A DNA stretch of 64,000 bases, taken from NCBI GenBank assembly GCA_002269645.1, contig NIVC01000793.1, positions 1 to 64,000 on the forward strand. The letters run 5' to 3'. Below are positions 2,035 to 21,693 of the stretch, one piece after another. This stretch comes from Macrostomum lignano (lineage: Eukaryota). Positions within the stretch are counted from its first letter, which is position 1; each line of letters opens with the position of its first letter. The position numbers were made by a program, and so were the translations under genes. The notes under the pieces were generated by a model. The model worked only from the letters and a program-made list of their open reading frames with translations. It was not told the DNA's origin and searched no databases.

Positions 2035-2788
2035 GTAAGAGTTCGAATTTGAGTTTTTATATTAAAATAGAGCGACGTTGTACATAAAATGAAATAGAGC
2101 CCCCTAATTTTCGAATCCAAATGGCATTTAGAAGTGCTTCTCAAAGCGGTTTGTTGAAGTATTTAGTTGTTTCGCTGGCTACGCGCTTCAGCTTAGTGTA
2201 ATTGCTGCCGTCAACATGCATGCGTGGGCATTACGCTCGTACTAGGGCGGAAGAAGCACTGGAGCTACTAAAAGCAACATAAAAATTCTCATTAGGCTGT
2301 TGAAGAAATTCTCTATTTGCAATTTTACTTTGTACACGATCATTTCGCCAACTGACCGAGAATACGCACTGTTTGCTGTTGCAAGTGTACATTTCCAGTT
2401 CTAAACTCCAACCTCTGTCCCTCTTGTGCGTGATCTATGCACAATGTGCTCTTTTTAGTGTACGATGATTTCTCTCCTTCTAGACATTTTTCTCTCTGGT
2501 TTTAATCTGTATTTTTCCAAAAGCTCAATTATGTCTTTCTATCTCGCTCTATGCATTCGCTCATCTTTTAGCTCGGTTAATTTTGTCTTCCTCGTCATTG
2601 TCCTTTTTATAGTTTAGGAATGAAACGATGCCCGATGCATTAAAGCAACTAATGCAAAAAATGAACTTTATAAAATGAAAGAGACAATCAAATAGCAAAA
2701 TTAGTAGACTGAACGGGACGGAAAGTGGGGAATGGAAACGCTACGAGTAGATGTGGTCAGAATGCAATAAATAAAATATTTTCTTCAG

Positions 2789-4998
2789 GTCGATGCCGAG
2801 TGAATTGGAACTCAGTCTGCTGCTTCAATCGACGCTTACAAAAGCCGGATTTGTTAAAGCCAGAGCCGCCTTGCAGGCTGCAGTTGCCGACGCATTGCAG
2901 GGAATTTTGCGAAGCAGGAGAGACTCATTCCCAGGGATCTATATTGTCGGCAGCTACTCAGAGGGCTGGGGCAACAGCCTGACCAAAGCGGACGGGAGAA
3001 CGGACGCGGAGTCTGACATTGACGTGATGAAGCTGTTTCAGGGTCGACTCTACCACATCAGAGGTAGTTGCCAATGCTGCGATCGAAAAGAAAAGGAGCT
3101 GGTCGACTGCAAGGATGGTCATATTCGAATTGGGGGCTTTGGTAAGCAGCTGTTTATTAAATTGGAATATCATAAGGGTCTCGGCGTCATGGGCATTATC
3201 GCGGAGGTCTTTTCATATAACAGGACTATGCTCAGTCTGGATTCACGCTTAAAGCCGCAGTGTAGGCCCAATCTGTGAAAGCAATGCTTATGGTACTCGT
3301 ACCAACTCGCATGCACAGGAAGTAATAACCAGGCCAGAGTTTTTTAATCAGCACACAAGTAGACATAATTCAGTTTGTGCGACTGACTCTCTGTGCTTTT
3401 GCTCCAGTACCATATTGTACCAAACAGTTCACTAAATCTAATTTGTTATCCAATTGTTCAGTTAAAAAGTTCCAATATGAAAGCATGATCTCATAAAAGC
3501 TTATAAGACATTTAATAATCTTTATCGTTAAAACAGCAACCAATCCGGCAAAGGCCTCAAGTGGCACACCATTGAGACCTGCAGTAGATGAAGTTGACGC
3601 ATGCCGCGTCTGCTGCTATCCGCCAATCGCTCCGCTGCTGCGCATCGAATCTCTAGCTCAAATATTTCTCCGTCCGTTCTGAATACACTTCAAGGCGAGC
3701 TCAGCAAGTCACCCTGTCACGTGGTGCACGCGGCACCACCTAGACAAGCGGGAAAGCAGCTTCGTGCAGCACAACTTTCCTGGAGAAACTGCTGCTAAGA
3801 GGTCTCAGCACGTTACAGGGCCAGCTATTCGTCACTCTGAAGTACTTGGTTAAGAAAGTAATTTGCCGCAAAGACGGCTACAATTTCGAGGGGCTAAAAG
3901 CATATCACGCAAAGACAATCACTTTCAGAATGTTGGAGGAGACGCCGGCTGAGGAATGGAGACCGCAGAATTTCGTGAGTCTAATAAGACGATCGCTGCA
4001 GATGCTTCTTGACAGCATCGAACAAAACTGCACGGTGGACAATGTGGATGGTCGAATCATGGAGCACTTTTTCCTGTGCGACGCTGGTTTGTACTTGAAG
4101 GGCTTGGGTCCGAGCCATTCCGGTGCAATGACACAAACAATTCAAAGTGCTATGAATGTTTTGAGGGATGTAATTGAAAAGCTGCCCCAGATCTTGCTGA
4201 AATTTCAAAGAACGCTTCGACCGGTCAACGAATCGGGCGTATTTTACTTTCACCCTTTTCAAATTCTACCGGAACTGAGACTTCAATCCATTCAGACAGA
4301 AAACCCAGAGCTTGAGTATCACGAGATCTATGATGTAGTGGGATGGTCACTGCTTCAATTATCTCAGCAGCGGATATCCGAATCGCCAGATTCCCGACAG
4401 ACGCTCATGCAAATGATTGACAGGCTCCCGGACTGCGCTCGACAGCTCGCGAGGCTCTTAGGGCGATGATCTGTCTCAAGTTCGACGATAGAGATGGAGC
4501 ACAAAAGGTTTTGAGTGCCTGTAGGCGGCACAACGTGAGCAGAGGAATAACCTGGTCTGCGGAGAACTTAGCAATTGAAGCAACAGAGGAAGACGTGTGG
4601 CAGTATTTGCTTAGCGTTGACTCGGCATGGAAATTCTGCTTCCGATTTGATCAACGCCCCGAGCTGCCATTTCTACCTAAAGTCATTGCAGAGTACTTTC
4701 CATTTGACGTTGACAGCTACACTCAAAATGCGGTCTTCTATGTCAATTTCGACGCACTGCTGCAGAGTCTGAGACTTCTGCTGACACCCGATGACGTAAG
4801 CGTTAGACACTGGATCCAGGAGGTGTCTTGGAGTGAGGATTTCAGGAACTCGCAGTGTGCGCCGCCTTCTGCGACGACTCCAACCTGATGCAGATATTCG
4901 TGGAGAAACTGCAGCGTCAGCCACATCTCAATCGTCTGCAACAGGAGCTGAGAACTAAATTGCAAGTTTTTGCCTTGCTTCCGTGTGTGCAGTCATAG
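2789..4998 (+). CDS. cGAS-like receptor (Mab-21/cGLR nucleotidyltransferase), 2 exons (2789-3141, 3537-4998), frameshifted
   Basis: NTase motifs GSYSEGW and ESDIDVM, candidate third acid in VDEVD. Mab-21 C-terminal helices STTFLEKLLLRGLSTLQGQLFVTLKYLVKK and LKAYHAKTITFRMLEETPAEEW. Intron 3142-3536 is GT..AG and phase 1. The C-terminal frame ends RLQQELRTKLQVFALLPCVQS-TAG at 4998. Confidence 0.85.
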
Positions 4999-5394: not shown

Positions 5395-8300
5395 GTCTCC
5401 CCTCAGTGTCCTTGAACCTGCCTCTTCGCTCCCCTCAGTGTCCTTGAACCTGCCTCTCCGCTCCCCTCAGTGTCCTTGAATCTGCCTCTCGGCTCCCCTC
5501 AGTGTCCTTGAATCTGCCTCTCCGCTCCCCTCAGTGTCCTTGAACCTGCCTCTCCGCTCCCCTCAGTGTCCTTGAATCTGCCTCTCCGCTCCCCTCAGTG
5601 TCCTTGAACCTGCCTCTCCGCTCCCCTCAGTGTCCTTGAATCTGCCTCTCCGCTCCCCTCAGTGTCCTTGAATCTGCCTCTCCGCTCCCCTCAGTGTCCT
5701 TGAACCTGCCTCTCCGCTCCCCTCAGTGTCCTTGAACCTGCCTCTCCGCTCCCTCAGTGTCCTTGAATCTGCCTCTCGCTCCCCTCAGTGTCCTTGAATC
5801 TGCCTCTCCGCTCCCCTCAGTGTCCTTGAATCTGCCTCTCCGCTCCCCTCAGTGTCCTTGAATGTGGCTCTCCGCTCCCCTCAGTGTCCTTGAATCTGCC
5901 TCTCGCTCCCCTCAGTGTCCTTGAATCTGCCTCTCCGCTCCCCTCAGTGTCCTTGAATCTGCCTCTCCGCTCCCCTCAGTGTCCTTGAATCTGCCTCTCC
6001 GCTCCCCTCAGTGTCCTTGAACCTGCCTCTCCGCTCCCCTCAGTGTCCTTGAATCTGCCTCTCGGCTCCCCTCAGTGTCCTTGAATCTGCCTCTCCGCTC
6101 CCCTCAGTGTCCTTGAATCTGCCTCTCCGCTCCCCTCAGTGTCCTTGAATGTGGCTCTCCGCTCCCCTCAGTGTCCTTGAATGTGGCTCTCCGCTCCCCT
6201 CAGTGTCCTTGAATCTGCCTCTCCGCTCCCCTCAGTGTCCTTGAATGTGGCTCTCCGCTCCCCTCAGTGTCCTTGAATCTGCCTCTCGGCTCCCCTCAGT
6301 GTCCTTGAATGTGGCTCTCCGCTCCCCTCAGTGTCCTTGAATGTGGCTCTCCGCTCCCCTCAGTGTCCTTGAATCTGCCTCTCCGCTCCCCTCAGTGTCC
6401 TTGAACCTGCCTCTCCGCTCCCCTCAGTGTCCTTGAATCTGCCTCTCCGCTCCCCTCAGTGTCCTTGAATCTGCCTCTCCGCTCCCCTCAGTGTCCTTGA
6501 ACCTGCCTCTCCGCTCCCTCAGTGTCCTTGAACCTGCCTCTCCGCTCCCCTCAGTGTCCTTGAATCTGCCTCTCGGCTCCCCTCAGTGTCCTTGAATCTG
6601 CCTCTCCGCTCCCCTCAGTGTCCTTGAATCTGCCTCTCCGCTCCCCTCAGTGTCCTTGAATCTGCCTCTCCGCTCCCCTCAGTGTCCTTGAACCTGCCTC
6701 TCCGCTCCCCTCAGTGTCCTTGAATCTGCCTCTCCGCTCCCCTCAGTGTCCTTGAACCTGCCTCTCCGCTCCCCTCAGTGTCCTTGAATCTGCCTCTCCG
6801 CTCCCCTCAGTGTCCTTGAATCTGCCTCTCCGCTCCCCTCAGTGTCCTTGAACCTGCCTCTCCGCTCCCCTCAGTGTCCTTGAACCTGCCTCTCCGCTCC
6901 CCTCAGTGTCCTTGAATCTGCCTCTCCGCTCCCCTCAGTGTCCTTGAATCTGCCTCTCCGCTCCCCTCAGTGTCCTTGAATCTGCCTCTCCGCTCCCCTC
7001 AGTGTCCTTGAATCTGCCTCTCCGCTCCCCTCAGTGTCCTTGAACCTGCCTCTCCGCTCCCCTCAGTGTCCTTGAATCTGCCTCTCCGCTCCCCTCAGTG
7101 TCCTTGAATCTGCCTCTCCGCTCCCCTCAGTGTCCTTGAATGTGGCTCTCCGCTCCCCTCAGTGTCCTTGAATGTGGCTCTCCGCTCCCCTCAGTGTCCT
7201 TGAATCTGCCTCTCCGCTCCCCTCAGTGTCCTTGAACCTGCCTCTCCGCTCCCCTCAGTGTCCTTGAAACTGCCTCTCCGCTCCCCTCAGTGTCCTTGAA
7301 TCTGCCTCTCGGCTCCCCTCAGTGTCCTTGAATCTGCCTCTCCGCTCCCCTCAGTGTCCTTGAATCTGCCTCTCCGCTCCCCTCAGTGTCCTTGAATGTG
7401 GCTCTCCGCTCCCCTCAGTGTCCTTGAATGTGGCTCTCCGCTCCCCTCAGTGTCCTTGAATCTGCCTCTCCGCTCCCCTCAGTGTCCTTGAATCTGCCTC
7501 TCCGCTCCCCTCAGTGTCCTTGAATCTGCCTCTCGCTCCCCTCAGTGTCCTTGAATGTGGCTCTCCGCTCCCCTCAGTGTCCTTGAATGTGGCTCTCCGC
7601 TCCCCTCAGTGTCCTTGAATGTGGCTCTCCGCTCCCCTCAGTGTCCTTGAATGTGCCTCTCCGCTCCCCTCAGTGTTCTTGAATCTGCCTCTCCGCTCCC
7701 CTCAGTGTCCTTGAACCTGCCTCTCCGCTCCCCTCAGTGTCCTTGAATCTGCCTCTCGGCTCCCCTCAGTGTCCTTGAATGTGGCTCTCCGCTCCCCTCA
7801 GTGTCCTTGAATGTGGCTCTCCGCTCCCCTCAGTGTCCTTGAATGTGGCTCTCCGCTCCCCTCAGTGTCCTTGAATGTGGCTCTCCGCTCCCCTCAGTGT
7901 CCTTGAATGTGGCTCTCCGCTCCCCTCAGTGTCCTTGAATCTGCCTCTCCGCTCCCCTCAGTGTCCTTGAATCTGCCTCTCCGCTCCCCTCAGTGTCCTT
8001 GAATGTGGCTCTCCGCTCCCCTCAGTGTCCTTGAATGTGGCTCTCCGCTCCCCTCAGTGTCCTTGAATCTGCCTCTCCGCTCCCCTCAGTGTCCTTGAAC
8101 CTGCCTCTCCGCTCCCCTCAGTGTCCTTGAAACTGCCTCTCCGCTCCCCTCAGTGTCCTTGAACCTGCCTCTCCGCTCCCCTCAGTGTCCTTGAATCTGC
8201 CTCTCGGCTCCCCTCAGTGTCCTTGAATCTGCCTCTCCGCTCCCCTCAGTGTCCTTGAATCTGCCTCTCCGCTCCCCTCAGTGTCCTTGAATGTGGCTCT

Positions 8301-8875
8301 CCGCTCCCCTCAGTGTCCTTGAATGTGGCTCTCCGCTCCCCTCAGTGTCCTTGAATCTGCCTCTCCGCTCCCCTCAGTGTCCTTGAATCTGCCTCTCCGC
8401 TCCCCTCAGTGTCCTTGAATCTGCCTCTCGGCTCCCCTCAGTGTCCTTGAATGTGGCTCTCCGCTCCCCTCAGTGTCCTTGAATGTGGCTCTCCGCTCCC
8501 CTCAGTGTCCTTGAATGTGGCTCTCCGCTCCCCTCAGTGTCCTTGAATGTGCCTCTCCGCTCCCCTCAGTGTTCTTGAATCTGCCTCTCCGCTCCCCTCA
8601 GTGTCCTTGAACCTGCCTCTCCGCTCCCCTCAGTGTCCTTGAATCTGCCTCTCGGCTCCCCTCAGTGTCCTTGAATGTGGCTCTCCGCTCCCCTCAGTGT
8701 CCTTGAATGTGGCTCTCCGCTCCCCTCAGTGTCCTTGAATGTGGCTCTCCGCTCCCCTCAGTGTCCTTGAATGTGGCTCTCCGCTCCCCTCAGTGTCCTT
8801 GAATTGCCTCTCCGCTCCCCTCAGTGTCCTTGAATTGCCTCTCCGCTCCCCTCAGTGTTCTTGAATCTGCCTCTA
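5395..8875. repeat. 32-bp minisatellite (CTCCCCTCAGTGTCCTTGAATCTGCCTCTCCG), roughly 108 copies
   Basis: Directly visible tandem unit with variants AATCTGCC / AACCTGCC / AATGTGGC. Confidence 0.97.
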
Positions 8876-9656
8876 TTAACTATTAGTGCACGTTAAGTAT
8901 CAAAGAGGTAATTTAAAATCAGGATCAATGTGTGTGCATTTTCGTTTGTTTTGTATAATATAAGTTTTAATCATGATGCGAGACTTCTGTCATTTTCCAT
9001 CAATCAGAGACAATTAAATTGTGTTGAATATTTTACTCTATTCCCATCAAATGCATTGTTTGCATTTTTCGATCATGTTATTTAAAGCCAGATTTCACTT
9101 CACCAACACTAATTGTTATTCATTAGTTTGATATCGGTTTCAAAATTTGATATCGGAGAGAGACATGTATAATTAATTTATTGCTCAATTTTTTCTCATT
9201 CAAAAAGTAGAATTGTCAGTAGAGCTACCAAAAAGGGACTTTAATAAAAAACTTAAATAACTACATAACATGGTAGCAACTTTGTCACCTGGTGCCAGTG
9301 TTGAAGCTCCAGAAGCTCTGCCTGAGTTATGGCCAGTGATCAACAAAGTCAGAGCTGATGCAGACATATGGTCGACGTGCTGATGAAACTTGGAGGCTCG
9401 GCGAGGCCAGGTTGAGACGCAGTGCTGATTGGCGCACAGGGGTGTACTGAATACACTAGCGCGCGAAAATCCGAACTTCTGGCAGAATTTTTGAATATCT
9501 CGACGTGACTATTGATGAAAAGGTGCGCAACAAAAGATTTGACCGTGTTTTTTAATTTCGTGTGCCTGCGATGCTCCGCTCCGGTGCAGAAAAATTGTCA
9601 CGGGGAAATTTCCTCTCAGGGTATCTGATGGCGTCTGAGCAAATCTCTTTTCTCCC

Positions 9657-10442
9657 TGAGCATATGGTATCCGAGCATATGGCATCTGAGCATATGGCAT
9701 CTGAGTATATGGCATCTGAGCATATGGTATCTGAGCATATGGCATCTGAGCATATGGTATCTGAGCATATGGCATCTGAGCATATGGTATCTGAGCATAT
9801 GGCATCTGAGCATATGGTATCTGAGCATATGGCATCTGAGCATATGGTATCTGAGCATATGGTATCTGAGCATATGGTATCTGAGCATATGGCATCTGAG
9901 CATATGGTATCTGAGCATATGGCATCTGAGCATATGGCATCTGAGCATATGGCATCTGAGTATATGGCATCTGAGCATATGGTATCTGAGCATATGGTAT
10001 CTGAGCATATGGTATCTGAGCATATGGTATCTGAGCATATGGTATCTGAGCATATGGTATCTGAGCATATGGTATCTGAGCATATGGTATCTGAGCATAT
10101 GGTATCTGAGCATATGGTATCTGAGCATATGGTATCTGAGCATATGGTATCTGAGCATATGGTATCTGAGCATATGGTATCTGAGCATATGGTATCTGAG
10201 CATATGGTATCTGAGCATATGGTATCTGAGCATATAATATCTGAGCATATGATATCTGAGCATATGGTATCTGAGCATATAATATCTGAGCATATGGTAT
10301 CTGAGCATATAATATCTGAGCATATGGTATCTGAGCATATAATATCTGAGCATATGATATCTGAGCATATGGTATCTGAGCATATAATATCTGAGCATAT
10401 GGTATCTGAGCATATAATATCTGAGCATATGGTATCTGAGTA
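9657..10442. repeat. 15-bp minisatellite (GAGCATATGGTATCT), about 52 copies
   Basis: Directly visible. It explains the four overlapping repetitive ORFs in the track. Confidence 0.97.
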
Positions 10443-11103
10443 TATATGGCCATTTAAAAAAAACTGCACTCATTGGTACATATATGTGGTTTAAATCTTC
10501 GGAACAGAAGAGTATAATTAAAACGTGCATACAAACGCGATAAAAAATAGATAACACAGGTTCAAACTGGTTTCAGCTCACACAGTTAATCTATAAACCA
10601 AGCGACCCTGCAAGTTGTAAATAAGTTTTTAAGTAGACAGTTTGAAAACACGCCCAAGTCCAAACGTAGCATTGAACTCTACTGCGAACTCTTATAGCAA
10701 TTTCAGTTGAGAACAGAGCCTGCTGCTCATAACTCTCCAGACCAGCTAGCGCCACTGGGCATGTTGCGACTCAAACCAGCGCAATTTTAGCTATTGTCCT
10801 CAAACTACTTGAGAAGCTCAATAAGTGCTATCTATAATACATTGCATGCAGGCAACAAATTCAATGCAAAGCTGAGCTACTCTCGAATGGACTGTCAAAG
10901 AATAAGGCCAATAGCATTCAAGTTCAATTCCCTCAGGGCCTTGGCAATGAGTGGAGAATGGACAATAAAACCAATAGATGGCTAGGACAGTCGGGGTTAA
11001 GGGTTTAACCATTGAAGGAAATTTTTAAAGACCGGAGCACGTGAAGGGGACACAGCGGACCCCCCGCGTTCCAGCGACCGGAAAAACGTGCTGATTTCTA
11101 CAC

Positions 11104-11111
11104 TATAAATA
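11104..11111 (+). promoter_or_regulatory. TATA box of the peptide precursor gene
   Basis: TATAAATA about 100 nt upstream of ATG 11209. Confidence 0.65.
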
Positions 11112-11208
11112 CAGGGTCCTTGGATGCCCAGCGGACAACCAAGCAGCCAAGGCTAGATAACTCTACTCCAGCTTCTCAGCTTCATCAGGCTACAGCTACA
11201 AGTTCATC

Positions 11209-11445
11209 ATGAGGTGGCAGTTCGTTCTCGGACTCCTGCTGTGCGCAGCTCTGGCCGCCGCCAGACCCAGCAGCCAGGAGATGTCGGAGGAGGACGCGGA
11301 GGCGATGGCGGCGCTGGAGGCTCTGGCCGACATGGACGAGCCGGAGATGACGGACGAGAAGGCCGCTGAGCTGCAGAAGAAATTCCGCATCAGGATCAGG
11401 TGGGGGAGGGTTGCCAGAACTATGTTGAGGCTCATTGGCAAGTAA
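11209..11445 (+). CDS. Secreted prepro-peptide, probable cationic antimicrobial peptide precursor (78 aa)
   Basis: Hydrophobic signal peptide MRWQFVLGLLLCAALAAA; acidic spacer with 13 D/E; KK site; Arg-rich C-terminus FRIRIRWGRVARTMLRLI-GK. GC-rich coding sequence in AT-rich flanks, upstream TATA, AATAAA at 11808. Confidence 0.85.
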   Translation: MRWQFVLGLLLCAALAAARPSSQEMSEEDAEAMAALEALADMDEPEMTDEKAAELQKKFRIRIRWGRVARTMLRLIGK

Positions 11446-12137
11446 GTAGACTTGCAGGCAGGTACTCCGCTGCACCCACTGACCTCGGACACGGACCGGA
11501 CACCGCCCATGATTGCCGAATTTCAACTCTGGGACTCAATCTGAATATTTGTAGTTGCTAACTATGTACTTTATTGTTGGCTGAAATATATAATATTAAC
11601 TGCTCTGGAATTAATTTTGTACCTGAACAAATTACTACAGACAAAAACTTAAAATCTTTTTCGAGTTTTGAGTTCCAAATTATTCAATTCATTAGCATTG
11701 GTATATGCGGTCTAGAGACCCGCAGCTTTGATTCATTCAAGCTGAGCAATTTACTCAGCATTTCAAGTACTCATTTATTAAGGCCAATCATTTTTATTGC
11801 AGCAAGCAATAAAATTTACATTAATTTTTTTAACATCAGTACAAAACATCAGTCAGACTTACTCGACGTACAGAAAGTTTATTTAGCAGCAACGCTGAAA
11901 TCGAAGGCTCATTTTAGGCATGGATCCAGCTAGTCACAAAATGACTCAGTAGAATCATGAGCTGGTGTGTAAACTAATGAATAACAATTCGTGTTGGTGA
12001 AGTGAATTCTGGCTTTGAATAACATGATCGAAAAATGCAAACAATGCATTTGATGCGAATAGAGTAAAATATTCTCAGAAGTCTCGCATCATGATCAAAA
12101 CTTTCATTATACAAGCAAAACAAACGGAAATGCACAT

Positions 12138-12794
12138 GCGGCTCGCCCATTTACATTGCGTCGCAACTAGGCCGTCATGCTGTGTTTAGTTTGCTCCTAA
12201 AAGCGCAAGCAAGCGTTAATCTGCAAACTGACACGGGGCTGTCTCCGCTCTTTATTGCGTCACAGAATGGTTACCATGAGCTATTTGACTCACTCATAAA
12301 CGCTCAAGCTCAAAGACTCCGAAGGCTGCACGCCAATCTACATCGCGTCGCAGAACGGTCACTATGGCGTGGTGTTGTCCCTCGTCAGAGCTCATGCTGA
12401 CGTTGAAGCAAGAACTGTTACTGGTGAGACTCCCCTTCTAATTGCAAACGTCAATGGACATCACCGAGTTGCTGCCTTGCTGGAACAAACTATTCAGACA
12501 CAACGGGAATCACCGTTGCTTGAGTCTGAGACAGAAAAGGCTAAGCATCAACTTACTCATCAGGATCGTGCGGCTTTGTCAGAGTTAGAGTAAGAGTTCG
12601 AATTTGAGTTTTTATATTAAAATAGAGCGACGTTGTACAGAAAATGAAATAGAGCCCCCTAATTTTCGAATCCAAATGGCATTTAGAAGTGCTTCTCAAA
12701 GCGGTTTGTTGAAGTATTTAGTTGTTTCGCTGGCTACGCGGCTTCAGCTTAGTGTAATTGCTGCCGTCAACATGCATGCGTGGGCATTACGCTC
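12138..12794 (+). pseudogene. Duplicate fragment of the ankyrin exon end and intron start (copy of about 1572-2239)
   Basis: Near-identical sequence with an 11-nt deletion (GACGTCAATGT) that frameshifts it. Confidence 0.9.
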
Positions 12795-12845: not shown

Positions 12846-15800
12846 TCAGATGGCGCCCGCCTTCCCGAGGAAGTTCAACACCGCGACGCAGTTCTCGAAA
12901 ACTGCCGCGGGCTCCGGGCTTGGCCCCCAGAGGCGGCAGCGGTGTGATGTCAGGGCGGGGCAGGAGATCAGCAGATGGGCCGCCGTCTCCTCTCCATCGC
13001 CACAGAAGCGGCAGGTGGGGGCCACGTCAACGCCGATGGCGGCCTGGAAGCCCCGCAGGGCCGGGCAGCGGTCGGCGCGCAGCTGGCAGATCAGCCGCTC
13101 CTGCCGCCGCGTGAGGTCGCTTGTCGGCTGAGGCGGCAGGCGGCCCGCCGTGCAGGCAAGGTGCCAGGCAAGCGAGCTCGTGCTCGCCGCCTCGGTGGCC
13201 GCCGCGTTGTAGATCTGGTGCCAGCGGGCGAGGCAGTAGCGGCGGACGGCAGCCTGCGCGGCAGCTAGCGGTACGGGCGCGGTGCCTTGCGCCAGCGTGG
13301 TGCCTTGCTTGGCGATCTCGTCCACGGCCTCGTTGCCTGGGATTCCCGCGTGGCCAGGCACCCACTGCAGGTGGACCGAGGTTCCCCGGGCCGCGAGGTC
13401 GGCGAGGCTGCCCCAGACGGCGTCGATCATGGTGGCGCCCGTCGACCCGGGGCCGGACGCGAGCGCGCTAAGCGCGCTCAGGGAGTCGGAGCAGATGCGG
13501 ACCGGCGACAGCTCTGCCGGGTCCGGGGCCGCGAGCACCCACCGAAGGGCCTCAGCGATGGCCACTAACTCGGCGTGGAAGCTGGACGTCACATGGCCAG
13601 CAGCGACGCACAGTGTCGTGTTGGGCTCGACCAGGACGCCACTGCCGCCGTCCAGGATGCCGTCCTTCGCCGCTCCGTCGGTCCAGATCACGGTGCTGGC
13701 GGGCGGCAGGGCGGCAAGTGTCTGCTGCGCCGCGGCTCTCCGGGCCTCCGGCAGGTCCCCCCGCGAGGTTGGGGAGGCCAACTGCAGCCCGAGGGTGACA
13801 GAGTCCAGAACAGCCCAGGGAGGTGTCGTCGGGATAGCGTGGACGGGCTCTCGCGGGAAGCCGCTCAGGCCCGCAGCGCTGCATACACTGGCCGCCGTCT
13901 CGCGCCAGCCGCGGGCGCTTTGGAGGCGGCGGCGCGGGCCGACGCTGGCCGCGCAGGCGCGCAGCGGGTTGTCATGCGGCAGCCGGAGGGCGCGCTCGTG
14001 GAGGAGGCCAGCGTGCATCTCCGCGCGGACTGCCATCGGCGGCAATCCAGCCTCGCGCTCCAGCACCTCCGACCTGGTGTTCCGTGGACACCCGGTGATG
14101 ATGCGCGCGCCCAGGCGCTGGGCCCGGTCCAGGTGGTCGATAGCTGTCCTGCAGGCCGTCGGCATCCAGGCGCCGGCAGCGTACTCCAGCACCGGCCGCA
14201 CATAGGCCGTGTAGAGCTGGCGCACGTCGCTCTGCTTGGCGCCCCAGTTGCTGCCAGACAGCGCCGCCAGAACGCCGCAGCGGGCGCGGGCGCGGCCGGC
14301 GACGTTGGCGGCGTGCGCCGTGAAGCTGAGCAGCCGGTCCAGGATGACGCCGAGGAAGCGCGGCTGGCGGTCCGTCGAGAGCGGGGCGTCGTTCAGCCGC
14401 AGACGCAGCTCACGGCTGGCCTCTCCGGCGGTGGTGGTGAACAGGGAAGCGGCGCACTTGTTCGGCGCCAGCTCCATCCGCCACTCGTTCGCCCAGTCGG
14501 AGACCGCGTCGATCGCAGCCTGCGCCTTCGTCTCGGCCTCTTCCACGGTCAGGCCTTGCACTGCGATGGCCAGGTCGTCGGCGTAGAGGAACGGCGTGCA
14601 GTCGGACGGCAGGTGGTCAGGCAGGTCGTTGATGTACAGCGCAAAGAGCAGAGGGGCAAGGACACTCCCCTGTGGCAGGCCCTCGCGGAAGAGCCGCCAG
14701 CTGCTCAGCGCGCCGTCCACCCTGACGGCAGCGCGGCGATCGGCCAGGAAGCTGCTGACCCAGCGGACCCCGGCCGCTGGGATGCCGGCGTTGTGCAGCT
14801 TGTGCAGCAGGCCCTGCTTCCAGACGGTGTCGTACGCCCGCCGGAAGTCGAACAGGACGACGACCGTCCACCTGGCGGGGGCCGCCTGGTGGCCGTCGCT
14901 GATGAGCTGGGTGAGCCGGGCAATCTGGTCCTCGGTGCTGCGCCGCTTGCGGAAGCCGGCTTGGGCGGGGTGCAGCAGGTGCCGGGACTCGGCCCACCAG
15001 TAGAGCCGCGCTTGAACCAGACGCTCGGCCAGCTTGGCCAGAGTGGAGGTAAGGGCAATCGGCCGGTATGAGCCGATCTCGTCGGCCGGCTTGCCCTTCT
15101 TGAGGATCGGCACGATGTGGGCACGGCGCCACGCCGCGGGGACCTCCCCCTGGGTCCAGGACGCGTTGATCAGCTGCAGGACCGCCCGGCGGCCAGCGGC
15201 ACCGAGGTGCTGCAGATGTTCAGCGCAGATCTCATCGGGTCCTGGGGCCTTCCTGGCCGGGAGGGAGTGGAGAGCCCTGTCCAGCTCGCGGTGCGAGAAC
15301 GGCTTTCCAAAGTCTCTGCTCCCATGGCTGTCGGCGCCGGCTCGCGAAACGCTGCTGCGGAAGTTCTCGCGGCGGAGGTCTCGCGTCCTGCGGTCTTGCG
15401 GGAGGCGGCTGACGGAGGCATACTCACGGGCGTAGGCCTCGGCGATGTCCTTCGACTGGACGAGCGTCTTTTGGCCCACCCGGAGCGCTGCGTCCCGCTG
15501 CAGGTTGCTGTTTCTGCCGTCGAGGGAGCGGACAATTCTCCAGATCTTGGAGTGGTCGCTGTCAGCTGCCACCTCGCCGGCGAAGGTCCTCCAGCTCTCG
15601 CGTTTGGCGTCGGCGATCGTCTTCTTGGCGTCGGCACAGGCTCGATTCCAGGCAGGCCGCACGCTCGGGTCGGCGGCGGCGGCGGCCCACGCGGCGCGGC
15701 GAGCCTTCACGGCGTCGTCGACCTCTGGCGTCCACCAGGCCTTGGCGGAGGGCCGCGCCCCGCGAGGGACAGACGCCTTGTCGGCTTCCTGGATGGCCGT

Positions 15801-16613
15801 GGTCAGCTGCTGGTTGGCCTCGCTGACCGACTCGGGCGGGCAGGCCTCCCAGCCAGCCAGGGCTTCCTCGGTCCGGGCGCGGAAACTGGCCCAGTCCGCC
15901 TTCGCCCAGGACCGCCGGGCGGCGCCCCCGCGCTTGGCCGCGCCTCGGCTGTGGATGGTGATGCAGATCGGCAGGTGGTCCGAGCCGACGTCTCCCCGGA
16001 CCTGCCACTCGGCCCGGTTGGCGAGCGACTTGTGGCACAGGCTGACGTCAGGCGCCGTCTGCCGGGTGTTGGCGCGGCGCGGCATGTGGGTGGCGCTGCC
16101 GTCGTTCAGGACGCGCATGCCGGACACCACGGACCACTCGAAGACCGCCGTGCCCAGGTCCGACTCTTCCGATTCGGGGTCCCAGGCTGGATGGTGCGCG
16201 TTCAGGTCGCCCAGGATCACCGTGTTGACGCCGGACGGGAGGTGCCGGGGGCTGAAGCGCTGCACGCGGTCGTCGCCTTCAGCCGTTCTGATCGGCGGGA
16301 TGTAGAGGCAGTGGATGTCCAGGCTCTCGACGCTCTTTTCAGAGGGGAAAACCCGGACGCCGGCCCACTCCGTGGTGACGTCATCGGGGGCGCAGGGGCG
16401 CTCCTGCAGCACCTCGAAGCGCAGCCCCTCGCGGATGACGATTGCAGCGCCTCCTCCGCGCGTGGGGCCGCCGGAGCGCCGGCCGCTCTGTCGGTGGCGC
16501 CAGATCGCGTTGAACCCCGGCAGGCGCGGATCCCGACCCTCGGTGGTGTGGGTCTCTTGCAGGCACGCCACGTCGATGCGCAGATCCAGCAGCAGCTTGC
16601 ACAATTCGGGCAT
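12846..16613 (-). CDS. APE endonuclease - reverse transcriptase - RNase H - CCHC zinc finger polyprotein
   Basis: LQET, GDLNAHH and SDHLPI (APE); LPQGSVLAP and YADD (RT); WTDGA and WVPGHAGIPGNEAVD (RNase H); CRFCGDGEETAAHLLISC. The frame stays open about 47 codons upstream (LQLNAEG). Confidence 0.95.
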   Translation of the reverse strand: MPELCKLLLDLRIDVACLQETHTTEGRDPRLPGFNAIWRHRQSGRRSGGPTRGGGAAIVIREGLRFEVLQERPCAPDDVTTEWAGVRVFPSEKSVESLDIHCLYIPPIRTAEGDDRVQRFSPRHLPSGVNTVILGDLNAHHPAWDPESEESDLGTAVFEWSVVSGMRVLNDGSATHMPRRANTRQTAPDVSLCHKSLANRAEWQVRGDVGSDHLPICITIHSRGAAKRGGAARRSWAKADWASFRARTEEALAGWEACPPESVSEANQQLTTAIQEADKASVPRGARPSAKAWWTPEVDDAVKARRAAWAAAAADPSVRPAWNRACADAKKTIADAKRESWRTFAGEVAADSDHSKIWRIVRSLDGRNSNLQRDAALRVGQKTLVQSKDIAEAYAREYASVSRLPQDRRTRDLRRENFRSSVSRAGADSHGSRDFGKPFSHRELDRALHSLPARKAPGPDEICAEHLQHLGAAGRRAVLQLINASWTQGEVPAAWRRAHIVPILKKGKPADEIGSYRPIALTSTLAKLAERLVQARLYWWAESRHLLHPAQAGFRKRRSTEDQIARLTQLISDGHQAAPARWTVVVLFDFRRAYDTVWKQGLLHKLHNAGIPAAGVRWVSSFLADRRAAVRVDGALSSWRLFREGLPQGSVLAPLLFALYINDLPDHLPSDCTPFLYADDLAIAVQGLTVEEAETKAQAAIDAVSDWANEWRMELAPNKCAASLFTTTAGEASRELRLRLNDAPLSTDRQPRFLGVILDRLLSFTAHAANVAGRARARCGVLAALSGSNWGAKQSDVRQLYTAYVRPVLEYAAGAWMPTACRTAIDHLDRAQRLGARIITGCPRNTRSEVLEREAGLPPMAVRAEMHAGLLHERALRLPHDNPLRACAASVGPRRRLQSARGWRETAASVCSAAGLSGFPREPVHAIPTTPPWAVLDSVTLGLQLASPTSRGDLPEARRAAAQQTLAALPPASTVIWTDGAAKDGILDGGSGVLVEPNTTLCVAAGHVTSSFHAELVAIAEALRWVLAAPDPAELSPVRICSDSLSALSALASGPGSTGATMIDAVWGSLADLAARGTSVHLQWVPGHAGIPGNEAVDEIAKQGTTLAQGTAPVPLAAAQAAVRRYCLARWHQIYNAAATEAASTSSLAWHLACTAGRLPPQPTSDLTRRQERLICQLRADRCPALRGFQAAIGVDVAPTCRFCGDGEETAAHLLISCPALTSHRCRLWGPSPEPAAVFENCVAVLNFLGKAGAI

Positions 16614-17128: not shown

Positions 17129-18040
17129 CGAGGGTCACTCAGAAAGTTCTTAGCCTGAACACGAAAACAGCAACAAATGAACTAAAAAATGACTACAAGT
17201 GCTCAAAACACTCTCTACCGGCATAGATACAGGCTTGCATCCTGTGAAACCAGCTGTCGAAGCACTGCCGCCGATCCTCATCCTGGAGCTCCTTGATGAT
17301 GTTTTTGAACTCATTCACAGCTTCTTCCGGTGAAGAAAAGACCTGGCCCTTCAGAATCTCCTTGCACTTCGGAAACAGAAAAAAGTCGCACGGTGCCAGG
17401 TCTGCACTGTACGCAGGGTGAGTCATCAGCTGGACCCCACAGTCAGCCAGAAACTCCAGAGTTGGAGCCGCCGTGTGCGCACTGGCGTTGTCGTGGTGCA
17501 GAAGCACCCCGCGCATTCCGCACCTTGGGCGCCTCTGGCTCACAGCAGAAAAGACTTTGGACTGGTACACAACGGTTAGGCAAACCGTTGTGTACCAGTC
17601 AGCGGTGACAGTCTGGTGATCTTTAAGTGAAACGGAAGTCACATGCCCAGTGCGCATCAAGAAACAGGCCACCATCTGCTTGCCGACACTCCGGCTGCGC
17701 CGAAACTTGGTGGGGCTGTCCTCGTCTCCAAAGGTCCACATGGCTGACTGGCGCTTGCTTTCGGGGTCGTATGGTTGCGATTTCAGGGGCCGGTTTTAAC
17801 TGGCTCTGTAATCGTGTTTAGCCGACGGGGCCGCCCCCTCCGCCCGTCTGTGCGTGCGGCCCGCGCGTGTGCATCCCTGCCGCAAGGCGGGGTGCTGGGT
17901 GCCGGCCGGCAGGCGGGGGTGTTGGGTTGGGGGTGGGCGGCGTCGGCCCCCTTTTATTTGTGCGCTCACGCTCTCTCGTGCGCGCTGCGAGAGCGCTTTG
18001 GCTCGTAAAATTTTTTTGCGACTATCTGGCTCTGGCTATC

Positions 18041-19057
18041 ATGCATCGTGTAGACCGTCTAACAGTCAAACAACTCAAGAGTGAGCTGGGTAGCCGAGGC
18101 CTCTCAACCGCAGGCAATAAGTCGGCCTTGCAAGCCAGACTGAGACAACACGAGGGGCAGTCACAGCTTCAAGACGGCGGGACATCGGCATTGACATCGG
18201 CATCGGCATCGCCCTGTGCGCAGGAGGAGCTCCAAGACCAAGGCCGGGACCCACGGGAGGCGGACCTGGACGGCGAGATTCGGCGGGCGCAGAAACGGCT
18301 GCAGCTCCTAGAGCTTCAAACACGCGAGCGAGAGCTTCGGGAACGCGCCGTCGTGACTGCTCGTACAGAATCAGGTGAGCAGCAGAATCTTTTCGCTGAA
18401 CTTATCAACCCAACAGACCCTGTCAGCGCTAGGGCCAACCCCCGGCCGGTCGGGCAGCCGTGTCTACTCGTCAGAGACTTTGTCGATGATCTGTCAGGCC
18501 AGGCTGACGAGCTGCTCACCAGGGGCAGCTCTGGCGGCCTCGTGCTCAAGAAGTCGACGACCAAGCTGGACGGCATGACAATTGGGCAGTGGTTCGCCGG
18601 CAGTATGAAGGTCCTGCTTCAGATACTTGAAGACACAGCGCCGCAGGTGACCAGCAAGGGCCAAGTGTACAGCACAACTGAGCAAATCAAAGATTACACC
18701 CAGTACAATGTCCAGGTGGCCGAGCTATTCGACAGATTCCCAGCGCACCGGGTGATCAGATTCGACCATGACTACCGCCAGCACCGCGCAGCCAACAGCC
18801 TTCGCTGGGGCAAAGACTGCGCCCAGATGTCGATCAGGCACCTGCTCAGCATTAAGACGGACCAGTACAATCAGACAGCCAAGCGAAACCAGCCTAGCAA
18901 CAAGAGCCGCGTCATGGGTCCGCGGACATCCTCAGGCCGCGAGCTGTGCTTGTCCTTCAACAGCACCAACGGCTGCATGAGGAGCAACTGCCGATTCCTT
19001 CATGCCTGTCGAATCTGTGAGGGCAGCCACTCCGAGCAAAATCACGCAAAAAACTGA
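18041..19057 (+). CDS. Gag-like ORF1 with N-terminal SAP-like motif and C-terminal Cys/His finger
   Basis: LTVKQLKSELGSRGLSTAGNKSALQARL; CLSFNSTNGCMRSNCRFLHACRICEGSH. Confidence 0.8.
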   Translation: MHRVDRLTVKQLKSELGSRGLSTAGNKSALQARLRQHEGQSQLQDGGTSALTSASASPCAQEELQDQGRDPREADLDGEIRRAQKRLQLLELQTRERELRERAVVTARTESGEQQNLFAELINPTDPVSARANPRPVGQPCLLVRDFVDDLSGQADELLTRGSSGGLVLKKSTTKLDGMTIGQWFAGSMKVLLQILEDTAPQVTSKGQVYSTTEQIKDYTQYNVQVAELFDRFPAHRVIRFDHDYRQHRAANSLRWGKDCAQMSIRHLLSIKTDQYNQTAKRNQPSNKSRVMGPRTSSGRELCLSFNSTNGCMRSNCRFLHACRICEGSHSEQNHAKN

Positions 19058-19131
19058 GCAAGCGCGCCGACACGGCGCGCGAAACCGATTTTACCCGTCC
19101 TGCTTTTAACTGCCTCGCTCAGCCCGCTCCC

Positions 19132-21693
19132 GTGCCCTGCATCGTCAAGCCTCCAGTGCGGATGTCCGATCTGACGCAGCCAGTGGGCGATCTCTGCATC
19201 GACGCCTGGCGCTCCGAGCTTGTTGGCGACCCCGACGCTGATTTTATTCTCGACGGCATCGAGAGCGGCTTCTCCATTGTCGATGACTTCGACTTTACGC
19301 CGTGTCTCTGCAGCAACTACCAGTCCGTCAACCGGAATCGCGACCAAGTCCAAGCTGTTATCGGAGAAGAAATCCGGCTCGGGAGGTACGTCCCAGTCGT
19401 GGACAAGCCTGCGATGGTCTGTCCGCTGGGAGCCATTCCGAAAGACAGCTCCGGCATCCGGCTAATCCATGATTGCTCCGTCCCTCGCGGCTGCAGCCTG
19501 AACGATCACTATGCCCAACAACGGCGTCTCCGCTTCACCTCCGTCGACGAGGCCGTCAGGATGATGCAGCCCGGCTGGTTTATGGCAAAGGTGGACATCG
19601 CGTCAGCCTACCGCAGCGTGCCAATTTCTCCGCAGTGCTACCAAGCCACCGGCATCCACTGGGACTTCGGCAACGGCTGCTCAACCTTCCTGGTGGATAC
19701 GCGGTTACCATTCGGCAGCAGAGCCTCCGTCAGCATTTTCCATCGCCTCACGCAAGCGGCCCGGCGAATGATGTGTCGCAAGGGGTTCCTGGCAACCGTC
19801 GTTTTCATCGATGACTTCCTCGTCATGGCCAGGACGAAAGCCGAGTGCGACAGGGCCTACCACGAGCTGCGCAACCTGCTCATCAGGCTTGGCTTCTCCA
19901 TCAACGAGAAAAAATCGGTGCCGCCGACGACAAAGCTGCGATTCCTCGGCATTGACATCGACACCGTGCAAGCCAGTCTTTCCTTCCCAGCCGACAAAGC
20001 CGAAAAGCTTCAACTTCTCCTTGACACCTGCCTCTCGCGGAAGAGCCTGTGCAAGGCGGAACTGCAGAAGCTGCTCGGGCACCTCAGCCACCTGTGCACT
20101 GCCGCCCAGCACGGGCGAACTTTCCTGCGGCCGCTGATCGAGCTGGTCAACAGCCTGGCGCATCCGTCCGACAGGGTCGGCGTCACGGAGGAGCTCCAGT
20201 CGCAGCTGAGGTGGTGGATGACTGCGTTGAGCACGCTGCCGCCTAGAGCTGCCTGGCCCTCGCGTCGGCCGGCTGGAGCGATTGAGTCTGACGCCTGTGA
20301 CATTGGAGGCGGTGCTGTGCTGCATTTCGTCAACAGAGAACCGGTTTGGCTTTACATCGACTGGCAGTCCGACTGTGATGGCGCGTTCAAGGAGCTGCAC
20401 ATCAACCTCAAGGAGTGCGCCGCCCCGCTGGTTGCGATTCTGCAGCACCAAGAAGCCTTCAGCGGCTGCTCGGTTGCAGTCTACACTGACAGCACCGCCG
20501 CCTGCGGCATCATTAACTCGGGCTCCGCCAAGCACCAAGGTATTGCCGACCTGCAGAAGCGCGTCGCCCTGACCTGCATTCAACGCGACATCATCGTCCG
20601 CGCGCACCATGTGCCTGGCCGCTTCCAGCTGCTCGCAGACCCGCTGTCCAGAGCGCATGACCCCAGCCAGCTTGCCAACTTTCTGTTTCGCTTCTATGGC
20701 ACCTGCTATGTGCCAACCAGCTTGCTTGCCTCCGCTTGCTTGAGCTCTGCCGCTGCCTCCCACCTTCTGTTTCAGGTCCGCCTCCTGTGGTCCCGGTTCC
20801 CGGCCTCTCCGCACCGGCACGTCGACTGCTCAGCCAAGGCTTCGCCAGCTCAACTCGCTCCGCCTACGCAAGCCAGTGCGCGTCCTGGATGCGATTCTGC
20901 GCCGCCCACAGACTTCAACCGCTGTCAGCGCAGCCCGCCGACGTGTGCAACTACCTGGCGGAGCTGGCGAACAACCGGCTGTTCTCAGTCAGCAGCCTAT
21001 CCTGCCACCTCGCCGCCGTGTCCTCGCTCTACAAATCAAGCAGCGTGGCTGACCCGACGAGGCAGCCACTGGTTCAGCTGGCCCTGCACGGCGCCCGCCG
21101 GCTCCTCGGCGCCGCCCCAAGGAGCAAACGAGCGTTGCGGCCGGCCGACCTGCAGCGGCTGCACGGCGTGCTGCGACCTGAAGAGCCCAGGGACTGCGCA
21201 TTCTGGTGCGCCTGCATCGTGGGCTGGTGGGCCATGCTGCGGCGAGCCAACCTGTGCGTATCCGGCCGGTTCGATCCGCAGCGAGACCTCAGTACGAGCT
21301 GCATCCGGCCGTCAAGGGCGGGCGTCATCCTCGTCATTCCGAGGTCGAAGACCAACCAGTTCGGGGCGCGCCAGCACCGAGTTTTCTTGCCGCAGCTCCC
21401 AGACGGACATCCAATCTGCCCGGTCACCGCGCTCCAGAAGCAGCTGCGCATTAACCGACCGCAGGACGCCCAGCATCACTTGTTCAGTACCCGAACCAGA
21501 CGGTCCACCGCACCGCTCACCGCGCGCACCTTCGCGAGGCGCCTGTCCGCGGCACTTCGACAGGCCGGGTTCGCCGAGCCAGCCAGGTTCTCTGGGCACT
21601 CGTTGCGTCGAGGTGGCGCTACATCCGCGGCGGAGGCCGGCATCCCCATCGATTCAATCATGCGAGTCGGTGACTGGGCAAGCAGCGCTGTAG
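19132..21693 (+). CDS. DIRS-type reverse transcriptase / RNase H
   Basis: RLIHDCS, KVDIASAYR, LPFGSRAS, FIDDFL, FLGIDID, ESDAC, YTDS, ADPLSR. The part after about 20800 is overlap with the YR frame. Confidence 0.9.
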   Translation: MPCIVKPPVRMSDLTQPVGDLCIDAWRSELVGDPDADFILDGIESGFSIVDDFDFTPCLCSNYQSVNRNRDQVQAVIGEEIRLGRYVPVVDKPAMVCPLGAIPKDSSGIRLIHDCSVPRGCSLNDHYAQQRRLRFTSVDEAVRMMQPGWFMAKVDIASAYRSVPISPQCYQATGIHWDFGNGCSTFLVDTRLPFGSRASVSIFHRLTQAARRMMCRKGFLATVVFIDDFLVMARTKAECDRAYHELRNLLIRLGFSINEKKSVPPTTKLRFLGIDIDTVQASLSFPADKAEKLQLLLDTCLSRKSLCKAELQKLLGHLSHLCTAAQHGRTFLRPLIELVNSLAHPSDRVGVTEELQSQLRWWMTALSTLPPRAAWPSRRPAGAIESDACDIGGGAVLHFVNREPVWLYIDWQSDCDGAFKELHINLKECAAPLVAILQHQEAFSGCSVAVYTDSTAACGIINSGSAKHQGIADLQKRVALTCIQRDIIVRAHHVPGRFQLLADPLSRAHDPSQLANFLFRFYGTCYVPTSLLASACLSSAAASHLLFQVRLLWSRFPASPHRHVDCSAKASPAQLAPPTQASARPGCDSAPPTDFNRCQRSPPTCATTWRSWRTTGCSQSAAYPATSPPCPRSTNQAAWLTRRGSHWFSWPCTAPAGSSAPPQGANERCGRPTCSGCTACCDLKSPGTAHSGAPASWAGGPCCGEPTCAYPAGSIRSETSVRAASGRQGRASSSSFRGRRPTSSGRASTEFSCRSSQTDIQSARSPRSRSSCALTDRRTPSITCSVPEPDGPPHRSPRAPSRGACPRHFDRPGSPSQPGSLGTRCVEVALHPRRRPASPSIQSCESVTGQAAL

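Follow-up and report, generated by a model that had tools for sequence, protein, structure and literature searches.

A functional-looking gene of Macrostomum lignano belongs to a genus-restricted, tandemly expanding family of small secreted prepropeptides with predicted arginine-rich products

Introduction

What is encoded by a small gene that looks like the precursor of an antimicrobial peptide (AMP) and stands in DNA rich in repeats? The question is raised by a stretch of 64,000 nucleotides of the flatworm Macrostomum lignano (GenBank contig NIVC01000793.1, positions 1 to 64,000, forward strand), which is called the window below. An initial annotation, made from the letters alone, had described an intronless gene whose product would be cut to an amidated, cationic, secreted peptide. 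By its sequence, the gene looks functional and belongs to a multigene family of small secreted prepropeptides that is restricted to Macrostomum and is expanding in tandem. This family is undescribed, and it is of the familiar type in which a conserved signal is combined with a cationic peptide. We lean towards the reading that the secreted precursor would be processed to an amidated cationic effector of the host-defense or antimicrobial type within this Macrostomum-restricted family. That its function is antimicrobial is a well-motivated proposal, with about even chances of being right.

Results

The window contains one complete prepropeptide gene

The open reading frame (ORF) of 78 amino acids that had been quoted initially was located on the + strand, with an ATG start and a TAA stop (Table 1). 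Its annotated parts were all recovered, namely, the signal, the pro-region with 13 acidic residues, the KK site, the peptide with 6 Arg and no acidic residue or Cys, and the terminal G-K. The signal starts with MR followed by 16 hydrophobic residues (Kyte-Doolittle 9-mer mean of at most 2.9), and A-A-A precedes R19-P20. Residues 19 to 58 include 13 D/E and 4 K/R. The gene has a single exon, and the GC content at third codon positions (GC3) of the ORF was 0.85 versus a GC content of about 0.42 in the flanks. When the DNA of the paralogues was aligned, indels of 3, 9, 12, and 15 nt (all multiples of 3) were found in the coding part, and indels of 1, 2, 4, and 7 nt in the untranslated regions (UTRs). 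The GC3 contrast, the in-frame indels in paralogues, and the family promoter module upstream (see below) therefore argue for an ORF beyond chance. A tblastn search with four family proteins found no further family copies in the 64-kb window besides the one at 11209.

The intronless structure claimed at the outset was borne out by a paralogue, copy a of a cluster on contig NIVC01001664.1 (L005a), and by the single-exon gene models. An in situ hybridization (ISH) probe, RNA815_1838.3, has been published with a transcript length of 501 nt and a probe length of 364 nt (Table S11, Brand et al. 2020, PMC7336406). Its primers match L005 exactly at 9977-10000 and 10320-10340, a span of 364 nt that takes in the whole L005a coding sequence (CDS) and the stop. 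Since the primer span in genomic DNA equals the stated length of the cDNA-derived probe, L005a is unspliced across this interval. The 501 nt of the transcript are compatible with a 5' UTR of about 70 nt, the CDS, and a 3' UTR of about 160 nt. At the place aligned with the AATATA hexamer of the window, the paralogue at locus L002 has AATAAA.

At window positions 11440-11450, the TAA stop overlaps a strong donor-like site, GGCAA/GTAAGTAG (AA/GTAAGT). In the aligned stop context, L002 and L003 have AA/GTAGGT, and L004 has GKR-TGA and no donor. The site is probably a coincidence of Lys-stop codons. A spliced gene with the stop as donor was rejected because the paralogues stop at the same place in different contexts and the probe length equals the genomic span; an alternatively spliced isoform made through this donor could still occur.

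Table 1. Features of the peptide gene and its promoter in the window (a slash marks the predicted cut)
Feature	Position	Strand	Remarks
CACGTG, E-box-like, in conserved upstream block	11038..11043	+	kept in window, L001, L002, L003; not in L004/L005 copies
Family-specific promoter element GGAAAAACGTG	11080..11090	+	14 nt 5' of TATA core
TATA box TATAAATA	11104..11111	+	98 nt upstream of ATG
26-nt 5' UTR block CAGCTTCTCAGCTTCATCAGGCTACA	11169..11194	+	identical in window, L001-L004, L005a/c/e; neighboring UTR diverges
CDS, 78 amino acids, ATG to TAA	11209..11445	+	encodes MRWQFVLGLLLCAALAAARPSSQEMSEEDAEAMAALEALADMDEPEMTDEKAAELQKKFRIRIRWGRVARTMLRLIGK
Signal peptide MRWQFVLGLLLCAALAAA, predicted cleavage AAA/RP	11209..11262	+	hydrophobic core, conservation across family
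Anionic pro-piece RPSSQEMSEEDAEAMAALEALADMDEPEMTDEKAAELQ and dibasic K57-K58	11263..11382	+	charge count, position before cationic part
Predicted mature peptide FRIRIRWGRVARTMLRLI	11383..11436	+	18 residues; 6 Arg; no D/E/Cys
Gly77-Lys78 amidation-type signal and TAA stop	11437..11445	+	G/GK/GKR end in most family members; stop position kept in paralogues
Probable 3' UTR, AATATA hexamer at 11585	11446..11610	+	aligns with L001-L003 to about 11600

The gene belongs to a family found in Macrostomum

The closest proteins were M. lignano entries named 'hypothetical protein BOX15_Mlig...'. Three relatives were found with the single sequence, P0001 being 90% identical, and a profile of these first relatives led to a fourth, P0004 (family members were named P0001-P0004). 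When 1.84 billion representative proteins were searched with a profile, nine clusters were obtained, and a broader profile gave at least 23 protein clusters at 90% identity. Paralogues in which the signal is kept and the mature region varies, for which a tBLASTn-type check had been proposed, are thus present in M. lignano. All family matches were from this species, bar one Logan contig of 929 nt (SRR31628392 contig 42504, L006), which is taken as genomic DNA because it carries the promoter. That contig aside, the profile search of the representatives returned no homologue outside Macrostomum at E <= 0.001.

A common signal, M[RK]WQ[FLI][AV]LGLLLC..LA, was found in all members, and that of the window gene fits it. 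Invariant in 13 family members were M1, Q4, L7-C12 (L7-G8-L9-L10-L11-C12), L15, A16, and A18. The signal is followed by an acidic pro-piece, by KK (sometimes one K), and by an Arg-rich, hypervariable peptide that measures 6 to 34 residues and contains at most 15 Arg; most members end in G, GK, or GKR (Table 2). The layout proposed from the window gene, in which a signal, an anionic pro-piece, a dibasic site, a cationic peptide, and a Gly-basic end follow one another, holds for that gene and for most of the family.

Table 2. Predicted peptides of family members
Member	Predicted peptide
Window gene	FRIRIRWGRVARTMLRLI-GK
L001	FRIRIRWGRVARNVLRLL-GK
L002	WLLRRIRIRWRRVLRVASRVYRIYRYLPI-GK
L005a	WLGRRRRVRIRWRKVLRLVYRIYRHMPL-GK
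L005c	WRVRLRRIRIRWRRVYRVARRVYRAYRKYRRIIC-GKR
L005e	WRIRFRRIRIRWRRVYRVVRTAYRIYRHLPFP-GK
P0006	PRVRL-repeat form
P0013	WRRRRRFRWRKAIRVAGKVAKAVL
Short subfamily, 6-10 residues	FVRVRVRL-G, WLRVRARVRI-G, IFRVRVHI-G, IFRVRVRI-G, FIHIHF-G

The family had not been recognized initially, and aptly so, as it matches nothing in Pfam, no chain in the PDB, and no family described so far. At cutoffs of E <= 10 and E <= 1, the Pfam matches were all unrelated and sub-threshold, none being to Brevenin, Cecropin, Cathelicidin, or similar, and PDB sequence searches with two mature peptides matched no chain. We found the family described nowhere in the searched literature, which likewise yielded no paper on AMPs of Macrostomum, no mention of family gene identifiers in the text of papers, and no Macrostomum neuropeptide catalogue listing such peptides. 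A borderline 'Lock_Gag1-like' Pfam match in P0016 was rejected; it stems from an internally duplicated acidic helix.

Public models of family genes were seen to be faulty in several ways. P0004 (BOX15_Mlig001477g4) is a chimeric model in which 31 codons from the start of one family gene run on into the 5' UTR and CDS of another, 27 kb away. In P0005 (UniProt A0A1I8JEL3, 'Sushi domain-containing protein', ML2 assembly), the family pro-piece and cationic peptide stand at the C terminus of an unrelated protein of 565 amino acids, and in several 'partial' models the 5' UTR is translated in frame.

Family genes share a promoter module

The TATA box that had been reported upstream of the gene is present, and ATAAAT was unchanged in nine out of nine aligned family promoters, distant subfamilies included. 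The element GGAAA(A/C)ACGTG, 14 nt upstream of the TATA box, is common to the close members without exception and to one of the distant subfamilies (L007-L009). A composite pattern, GGAAAMACGTG-N(10-18)-ATAAAT, had a single match in the 64-kb window, at 11080-11110, and none of 100 shuffles matched it. At the other loci it matched once upstream of the family gene in each of L001-L004 and L006-L009 and six times in cluster L005; at L010 and L011 (P0012), the TATA box was present and the upstream element absent. The module GGAAAMACGTG-N14-ATAAAT thus stands upstream of nearly all family members that were fetched, and their gene models are single-exon. The 26-nt 5' UTR block lies within the transcript and adjoins the published forward ISH primer site of L005a.

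The E-box-like CACGTG and the family-specific element each contain an ACGTG core, a site of the basic helix-loop-helix (bHLH), basic leucine zipper (bZIP), or hypoxia-inducible factor (HIF) type. Because this core is common to both, one transcription factor may govern the whole family.

The signal is conserved and the mature part diverges

To describe the divergence by region of the CDS, Nei-Gojobori proportions of synonymous (pS) and nonsynonymous (pN) differences were pooled over paralogue pairs. The values of pS, pN, and pN/pS were 0.05, 0.02, and 0.36 for the signal, 0.23, 0.08, and 0.33 for the pro-piece, and 0.39, 0.28, and 0.73 for the mature part. The signal was therefore the most conserved region of the family, synonymous sites included, and the mature part, which also has in-frame indels, the most divergent, with pN/pS near 1 for some pairs. 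Given the low counts, the nonindependence of the pairs, and the ambiguous alignment of the Arg-rich part, our claim is limited to the gradient and to relaxed or diversifying evolution, and does not extend to positive selection.

Contig NIVC01000346.1 (L001) holds the closest copy and is collinear with the window for about 3 kb at about 90% identity, with flanks about 10% diverged; the subgenomes of M. lignano differ by about 2% (PMC10733133). By this measure the window would come from a sister species or strain, or would be an older duplicate that assembly Mlig_3_7 lacks. Between the window gene and that of L001 we counted about 8 nonsynonymous differences over about 181 sites and 7 synonymous differences over about 52 sites. 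The resulting pN/pS of about 0.33 indicates that the window gene is under constraint. That the copy in the window is a duplicate which is silent or decaying and gives no product, in a family that is otherwise real, is very improbable: pseudogenes and truncated stubs are frequent in the family, and the copy lacks a direct transcript and an exact database protein, but it retains an intact promoter module, TATA box, 5' UTR block, ATG, full ORF, and stop, and the pN/pS just given speaks against decay.

Seven promoter-bearing copies or remnants were found within 27 kb of L005: three intact genes, two stubs, one degraded pseudogene, and one gene whose signal peptide is frameshifted by a 1-nt deletion. 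In the degraded pseudogene, the ATG is changed to TTG, the TATA box is mutated, and there are an in-frame stop and a frameshift. As these copies indicate, the family is evolving by birth and death through tandem duplication. The two stubs (33393-33900 and 35036-35550) are near-identical; each has the promoter, the 5' UTR, and ten codons (MRWQFVLGL), followed by a (GGCACAGAC)n satellite. Since they lie 1.6 kb apart, stub and satellite were duplicated together.

An amidated, cationic, membrane-active peptide is predicted

According to the mechanism that we propose, the TATA promoter and the family-specific upstream element would give rise to a short unspliced mRNA. The signal peptide would be removed after Ala18, and on the way through the secretory pathway the anionic pro-piece (about -9) would keep the cationic tail (+6) neutralized. 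The chain would then be cut after K57-K58 by a proprotein convertase, a carboxypeptidase would take off Lys78, and peptidylglycine alpha-amidating monooxygenase would turn Gly77 into a C-terminal amide. The predicted product, FRIRIRWGRVARTMLRLI-NH2, would have a monoisotopic mass of 2311.416 Da ([M+4H]4+ 578.861); for the paralogue products, 3802.301 Da is predicted for the L005a amide and 1283.841 Da for FIRARVRVRL-NH2. Once free, the window peptide would most likely bind and disrupt anionic membranes; in its head, hydrophobic residues and Arg alternate, and its tail would be helical and amphipathic. It might be deployed in or around the gonads, protecting gametes and eggs, and elsewhere in the body as well.

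The properties of the predicted peptide are consistent with this proposal. Its net charge is +6 from the side chains and +7 with a free N terminus and an amidated C terminus; it has no Cys, and its mean hydrophobicity is negative. The pro-piece has a net charge of about -9, roughly offsetting the cationic peptide. The hydrophobic moment of the FRIRIRW head is 1.76 at 180 degrees (strand type), and that of the RVARTMLRLI tail is 1.02 at 100 degrees (helix type). The peptide therefore shows the marks of linear cationic AMPs, that is, positive charge, no disulfides, and segmental amphipathicity. The alternating F-R-I-R-I-R-W start and the helix-compatible tail of the initial annotation held segment by segment; for the peptide as a whole, this part of the annotation stood only marginally above shuffles.

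Several observations weigh against this reading. The moments of the whole window peptide were barely above those of composition-matched shuffles (p of 0.06 to 0.08). An AlphaFold model of the precursor was all-helical, with a helix over residues 49 to 77, at a low-confidence pLDDT of 63.9, so a fold search was not justified. KK is a weaker convertase site than KR or RR. Two members have no C-terminal Gly, P0006 ending in SKK and P0013 in AVL, so amidation is not universal in the family. RR and RRRR runs inside longer paralogues are possible internal convertase sites, and the boundaries of the mature peptides are therefore uncertain family-wide. For the window copy itself, we found no direct transcript, transcription being seen in paralogues, and the exact window protein was not among the entries of the protein collection. 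The searched literature held no functional, peptidomic, or infection-response data on family members. Finally, 'gonads' is the sole published ISH pattern found for any family member, and it fits a reproductive function equally well.

Known AMPs show the same design

The closest likeness was to the arminins of Hydra. Arminin 1a-C, KPWRFRRAIRRVRWRKVAPYIPFVVKTVGKK-NH2, comes from a precursor with the same succession of signal, anionic part, cationic Arg/Trp-rich peptide, and Gly-basic end, and is amidated. The AMP families of Hydra have bipartite charge, paralogues clustered by tandem duplication, and genus restriction (PMC10945409). A gapless likeness over 15 residues was found between WRFRRAIRRVRWRKV of the arminin and both WLGRRRRVRIRWRKV (L005a) and WRIRFRRIRIRWRRV (L005e); its score was above composition-matched shuffles (p of about 0.003 to 0.02, uncorrected for the choice of arminin as the object of comparison). 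However, arminins belong to another phylum (Cnidaria versus Platyhelminthes), have a different signal and pro-piece, and are endodermal epithelial peptides with demonstrated antibacterial activity (PMC10945409). The family profile found no Hydra protein at E <= 0.001 among the 1.84 billion representatives. Membership in the arminin family was therefore rejected, as only a short compositional motif is in common, and the likeness is a resemblance that most likely reflects convergence.

LF11-322-type lactoferricin di-peptides (WRIRIRR), which have been studied as membrane-active antitumor or antimicrobial agents, contain the RIRIRW of the window peptide in their reversed half. These are synthetic designs, however, and a match over a 6-residue low-complexity motif shows only that such a motif can be membrane-active. 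A Pro-Arg repeat, FLRVRLPRVRMPRVRLPRVRLPRLRVRFRWS-KK, forms the L006 peptide, which has no terminal Gly and recalls proline-rich AMPs.

The AMP-like character assigned to the gene was echoed by an independent machine-learning screen. Irvine et al. 2023 screened both M. lignano proteomes and listed a fragment of one paralogue, BOX15_Mlig001477g4, VVRTAYRIYRHLPFPGK, as AMP-like by 81.8% of 11 predictors and as 'Ungrouped' (PMC10414684). Their pipeline dropped ungrouped peptides, peptides without sequelogs, and those shorter than 10 residues, the last step removing the short subfamily (PMC10414684). Four flatworm peptides were synthesized in that study, no family member being among them, and neither the family nor its architecture or genomics received a description (PMC10414684).

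Expression and a possible reproductive role

The BOX15_Mlig models in GenBank (Mlig_3_7) come from a filtered genome-guided RNA-seq transcriptome (PMC5730564). As they were built from RNA-seq, the paralogues are transcribed. The probe RNA815_1838.3 is assigned to Mlig001477.g4, and its ISH pattern is recorded as 'gonads' and credited to Ramm et al. 2019 (Table S11, Brand et al. 2020, PMC7336406). In positional RNA-seq data (Arbore et al. 2015), RNA815_1838.3 had 93.16, 93.78, 48.77, and 176.07 reads in samples A to D, with class 0,0,0. Counts that are fractional point to multi-mapping among paralogues. Sample A is said to be the anterior fragment cut in front of the testes, and the work to which the ISH record is credited was reportedly a screen of socially sensitive transcripts. 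If sample A is taken as a pre-testis fragment, its equal reads argue that expression is not confined to the gonads.

These data bear on the strongest of the alternatives, a serious one that we nevertheless consider rather unlikely. According to it, the family members would be reproduction-related peptides secreted from testes or ovaries and acting on gametes, eggshell or yolk granules, or the mate; they would be shaped by sexual selection or conflict and not by pathogens, and their charge would serve to bind anionic gamete surfaces or matrices instead of to kill microbes. The 'gonads' record of L005a supports this idea, as do the reported origin of its probe in a screen of socially sensitive transcripts, the fast evolution of reproduction-related genes in Macrostomum (PMC7336406) and the genus restriction and birth-and-death evolution of the family. 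However, reads were as frequent in sample A, taken as a gonad-free head fragment, as elsewhere, and we did not find family gene identifiers in the searchable positional or germline candidate lists of M. lignano expression papers. In addition, an anionic pro-piece that masks an amphipathic Arg-rich amide is a cytolytic or antimicrobial design. The reproductive and antimicrobial roles are not exclusive, as germline AMPs exist, for example, the Hydra periculins (PMC10945409).

Other secreted peptides as alternatives

In their signal, acidic spacer, dibasic site, and C-terminal Gly, the family precursors also resemble those of neuropeptides. The short amides of the family (FVRVRVRL-NH2 and IFRVRVHI-NH2) could then act as ligands of receptors or peptide-gated channels in the style of FVRIamide and GFVRIamide (npp-1). 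The likeness is clearest in the short subfamily, whose peptides of 6 to 10 residues end in VR[LI]-Gly: forms such as FVRVRVRL-G and IFRVRVRI-G share with FVRIamide and GFVRIamide a short amidated F-V-R and an R-[IL]-amide, and FVRIamide-type neuropeptides are known from the literature in annelids, molluscs, and schistosomes. However, the precursors of the latter carry several tandem copies of a conserved short peptide between dibasic sites and are conserved across Lophotrochozoa, whereas each precursor of the genus-limited Macrostomum family has one hypervariable peptide, at its C terminus, and no tandem copies. There are at least 23 diverged clusters with one peptide each, of 6 to 34 residues and up to 15 Arg, and conservation is lowest in the bioactive part, whereas in neuropeptide precursors the peptide is what is conserved. 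The lack of a homologue beyond the genus among the 1.84 billion representatives and the lack of enrichment in the brain-bearing head fragment also speak against a neuropeptide or hormone precursor, which we regard as improbable.

A gradient of divergence from signal to mature part is well known in amphibian skin AMP precursors (dermaseptin/brevinin type) and in conotoxins, which have a conserved signal and a hypervariable mature part; frog AMPs also have an acidic pro-piece that ends in a dibasic site and use a Gly(-Lys/Arg) amidation signal. The Macrostomum family has the same gradient, synonymous-site conservation of the signal included. It differs in that there is no sequence similarity or Pfam match, the gene has a single exon, and the peptides are alternating and Arg-based instead of being Lys-rich helices. 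This pattern of a conserved signal with a hypervariable mature region is that of toxins too, and a signal, an anionic pro-piece, and an amidated cationic peptide are established features of linear venom cytolysins. The peptides could thus be offensive or defensive cytolysins from epidermal or pharyngeal glands, used against prey, predators, or competitors, with the same membrane chemistry and eukaryotic targets. We give this slightly less weight than the neuropeptide alternative: the recorded ISH pattern is gonads and not glands, and a very high Arg content with low hydrophobicity generally favors bacterial over zwitterionic eukaryotic membranes.

Genomic surroundings of the gene

The window is dense in mobile elements and satellites, as is typical of invertebrate DNA, and the peptide gene stands between two copies of an ankyrin-repeat/Mab-21-like gene. 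An ORF with ankyrin repeats (Pfam Ank, E 4e-32) lies in 1388-4469. The ORFs that come after it, in the same interval, show a G-S...D-I-D motif like that of nucleotidyltransferases and match Mab-21_C with 24.4 bits, just over the threshold of 24.1 bits. A partial second ankyrin copy, cut by a long interspersed nuclear element (LINE), lies just downstream of the peptide gene at 12182-12593. An ankyrin-Mab21 gene, perhaps cGAS-like, beside an AMP-like gene may be of interest.

About 760 bp upstream of the gene, at 9656-10445, is a 15-bp minisatellite, CTGAGCATATGGTAT, in about 53 copies, which recurs with very different copy numbers upstream of the L001-L003 paralogues. All six reading frames of this array are open and give spurious ORFs of more than 300 amino acids. 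A 32-bp satellite in about 109 copies lies farther upstream, at 5397-8874.

The mobile elements of the window include a GC-rich (about 0.70) LINE at 12846-16613 (- strand) with an intact 1,255-amino-acid endonuclease-reverse transcriptase-RNase H (EN-RT-RNaseH) ORF, and a second LINE at 24533-28208 (- strand). A DIRS-like element at 17867-21764 (+ strand) has a SAP-domain ORF, an RT, and a tyrosine recombinase, and a Harbinger-like ORF (HTH_Tnp_4, C2H2) is found at 37749-39200 (+ strand). An apparently intact BEL/Pao polyprotein of 1,792 amino acids (Peptidase_A17, RVT_1, integrase) at 30927-36305 (- strand) is flanked by 161-bp tandem-repeat arrays at 29288-29901 and 36670-37454. The same repeat seems to recur at about 40765-41223, and it may be a tandem repeat inside the long terminal repeats (LTRs). 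At 48561-51180 (- strand), 37 kb from the peptide gene, two exons of a DEG/ENaC gene (amiloride-sensitive sodium channel, Pfam ASC) were seen. Some annelid and mollusc DEG/ENaC members are known from the literature to be gated by FMRFamide or FVRIamide peptides; the nearness seen here is probably a coincidence.

Discussion

A bolder form of the host-defense reading can be put forward tentatively, and we hold it to be less probable than the reading towards which we lean. Under it, Macrostomum would have invented a family of natural (hydrophobic-Arg)n amides, ranging from 6-residue strands of the FIHIHF-NH2 type to 34-residue peptides with 15 Arg, and would express it from one promoter module in germline and soma. 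This would be the first bona fide endogenous AMP family of a free-living flatworm, with a W-x8-RWR[KR]V core reached by convergence with the Hydra arminins. The family might provide a transmissible protection of gametes and eggs that responds to the social or mating environment. If gonadal and socially sensitive expression proves true, reproductive plasticity would be linked to immune-type effectors in a hermaphrodite.

M. lignano is amenable to routine transgenesis and RNA interference (RNAi) (PMC5730564; PMC7053086). As it is the one flatworm with both, the hypothesis is directly testable. The 31-nt shared promoter module offers a possible route to the regulator of the whole family, and the short alternating Arg/hydrophobic amides form a compact natural series for structure-activity work.

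According to a systematic survey, the classical AMP families of lophotrochozoans are missing from flatworms (PMC10414684). Given this reported absence, the family described here bears on the question of which secreted effectors free-living flatworms use. It is also a clean case of evolution with a conserved signal and a hypervariable mature part, in which birth and death can be seen in one 27-kb cluster.

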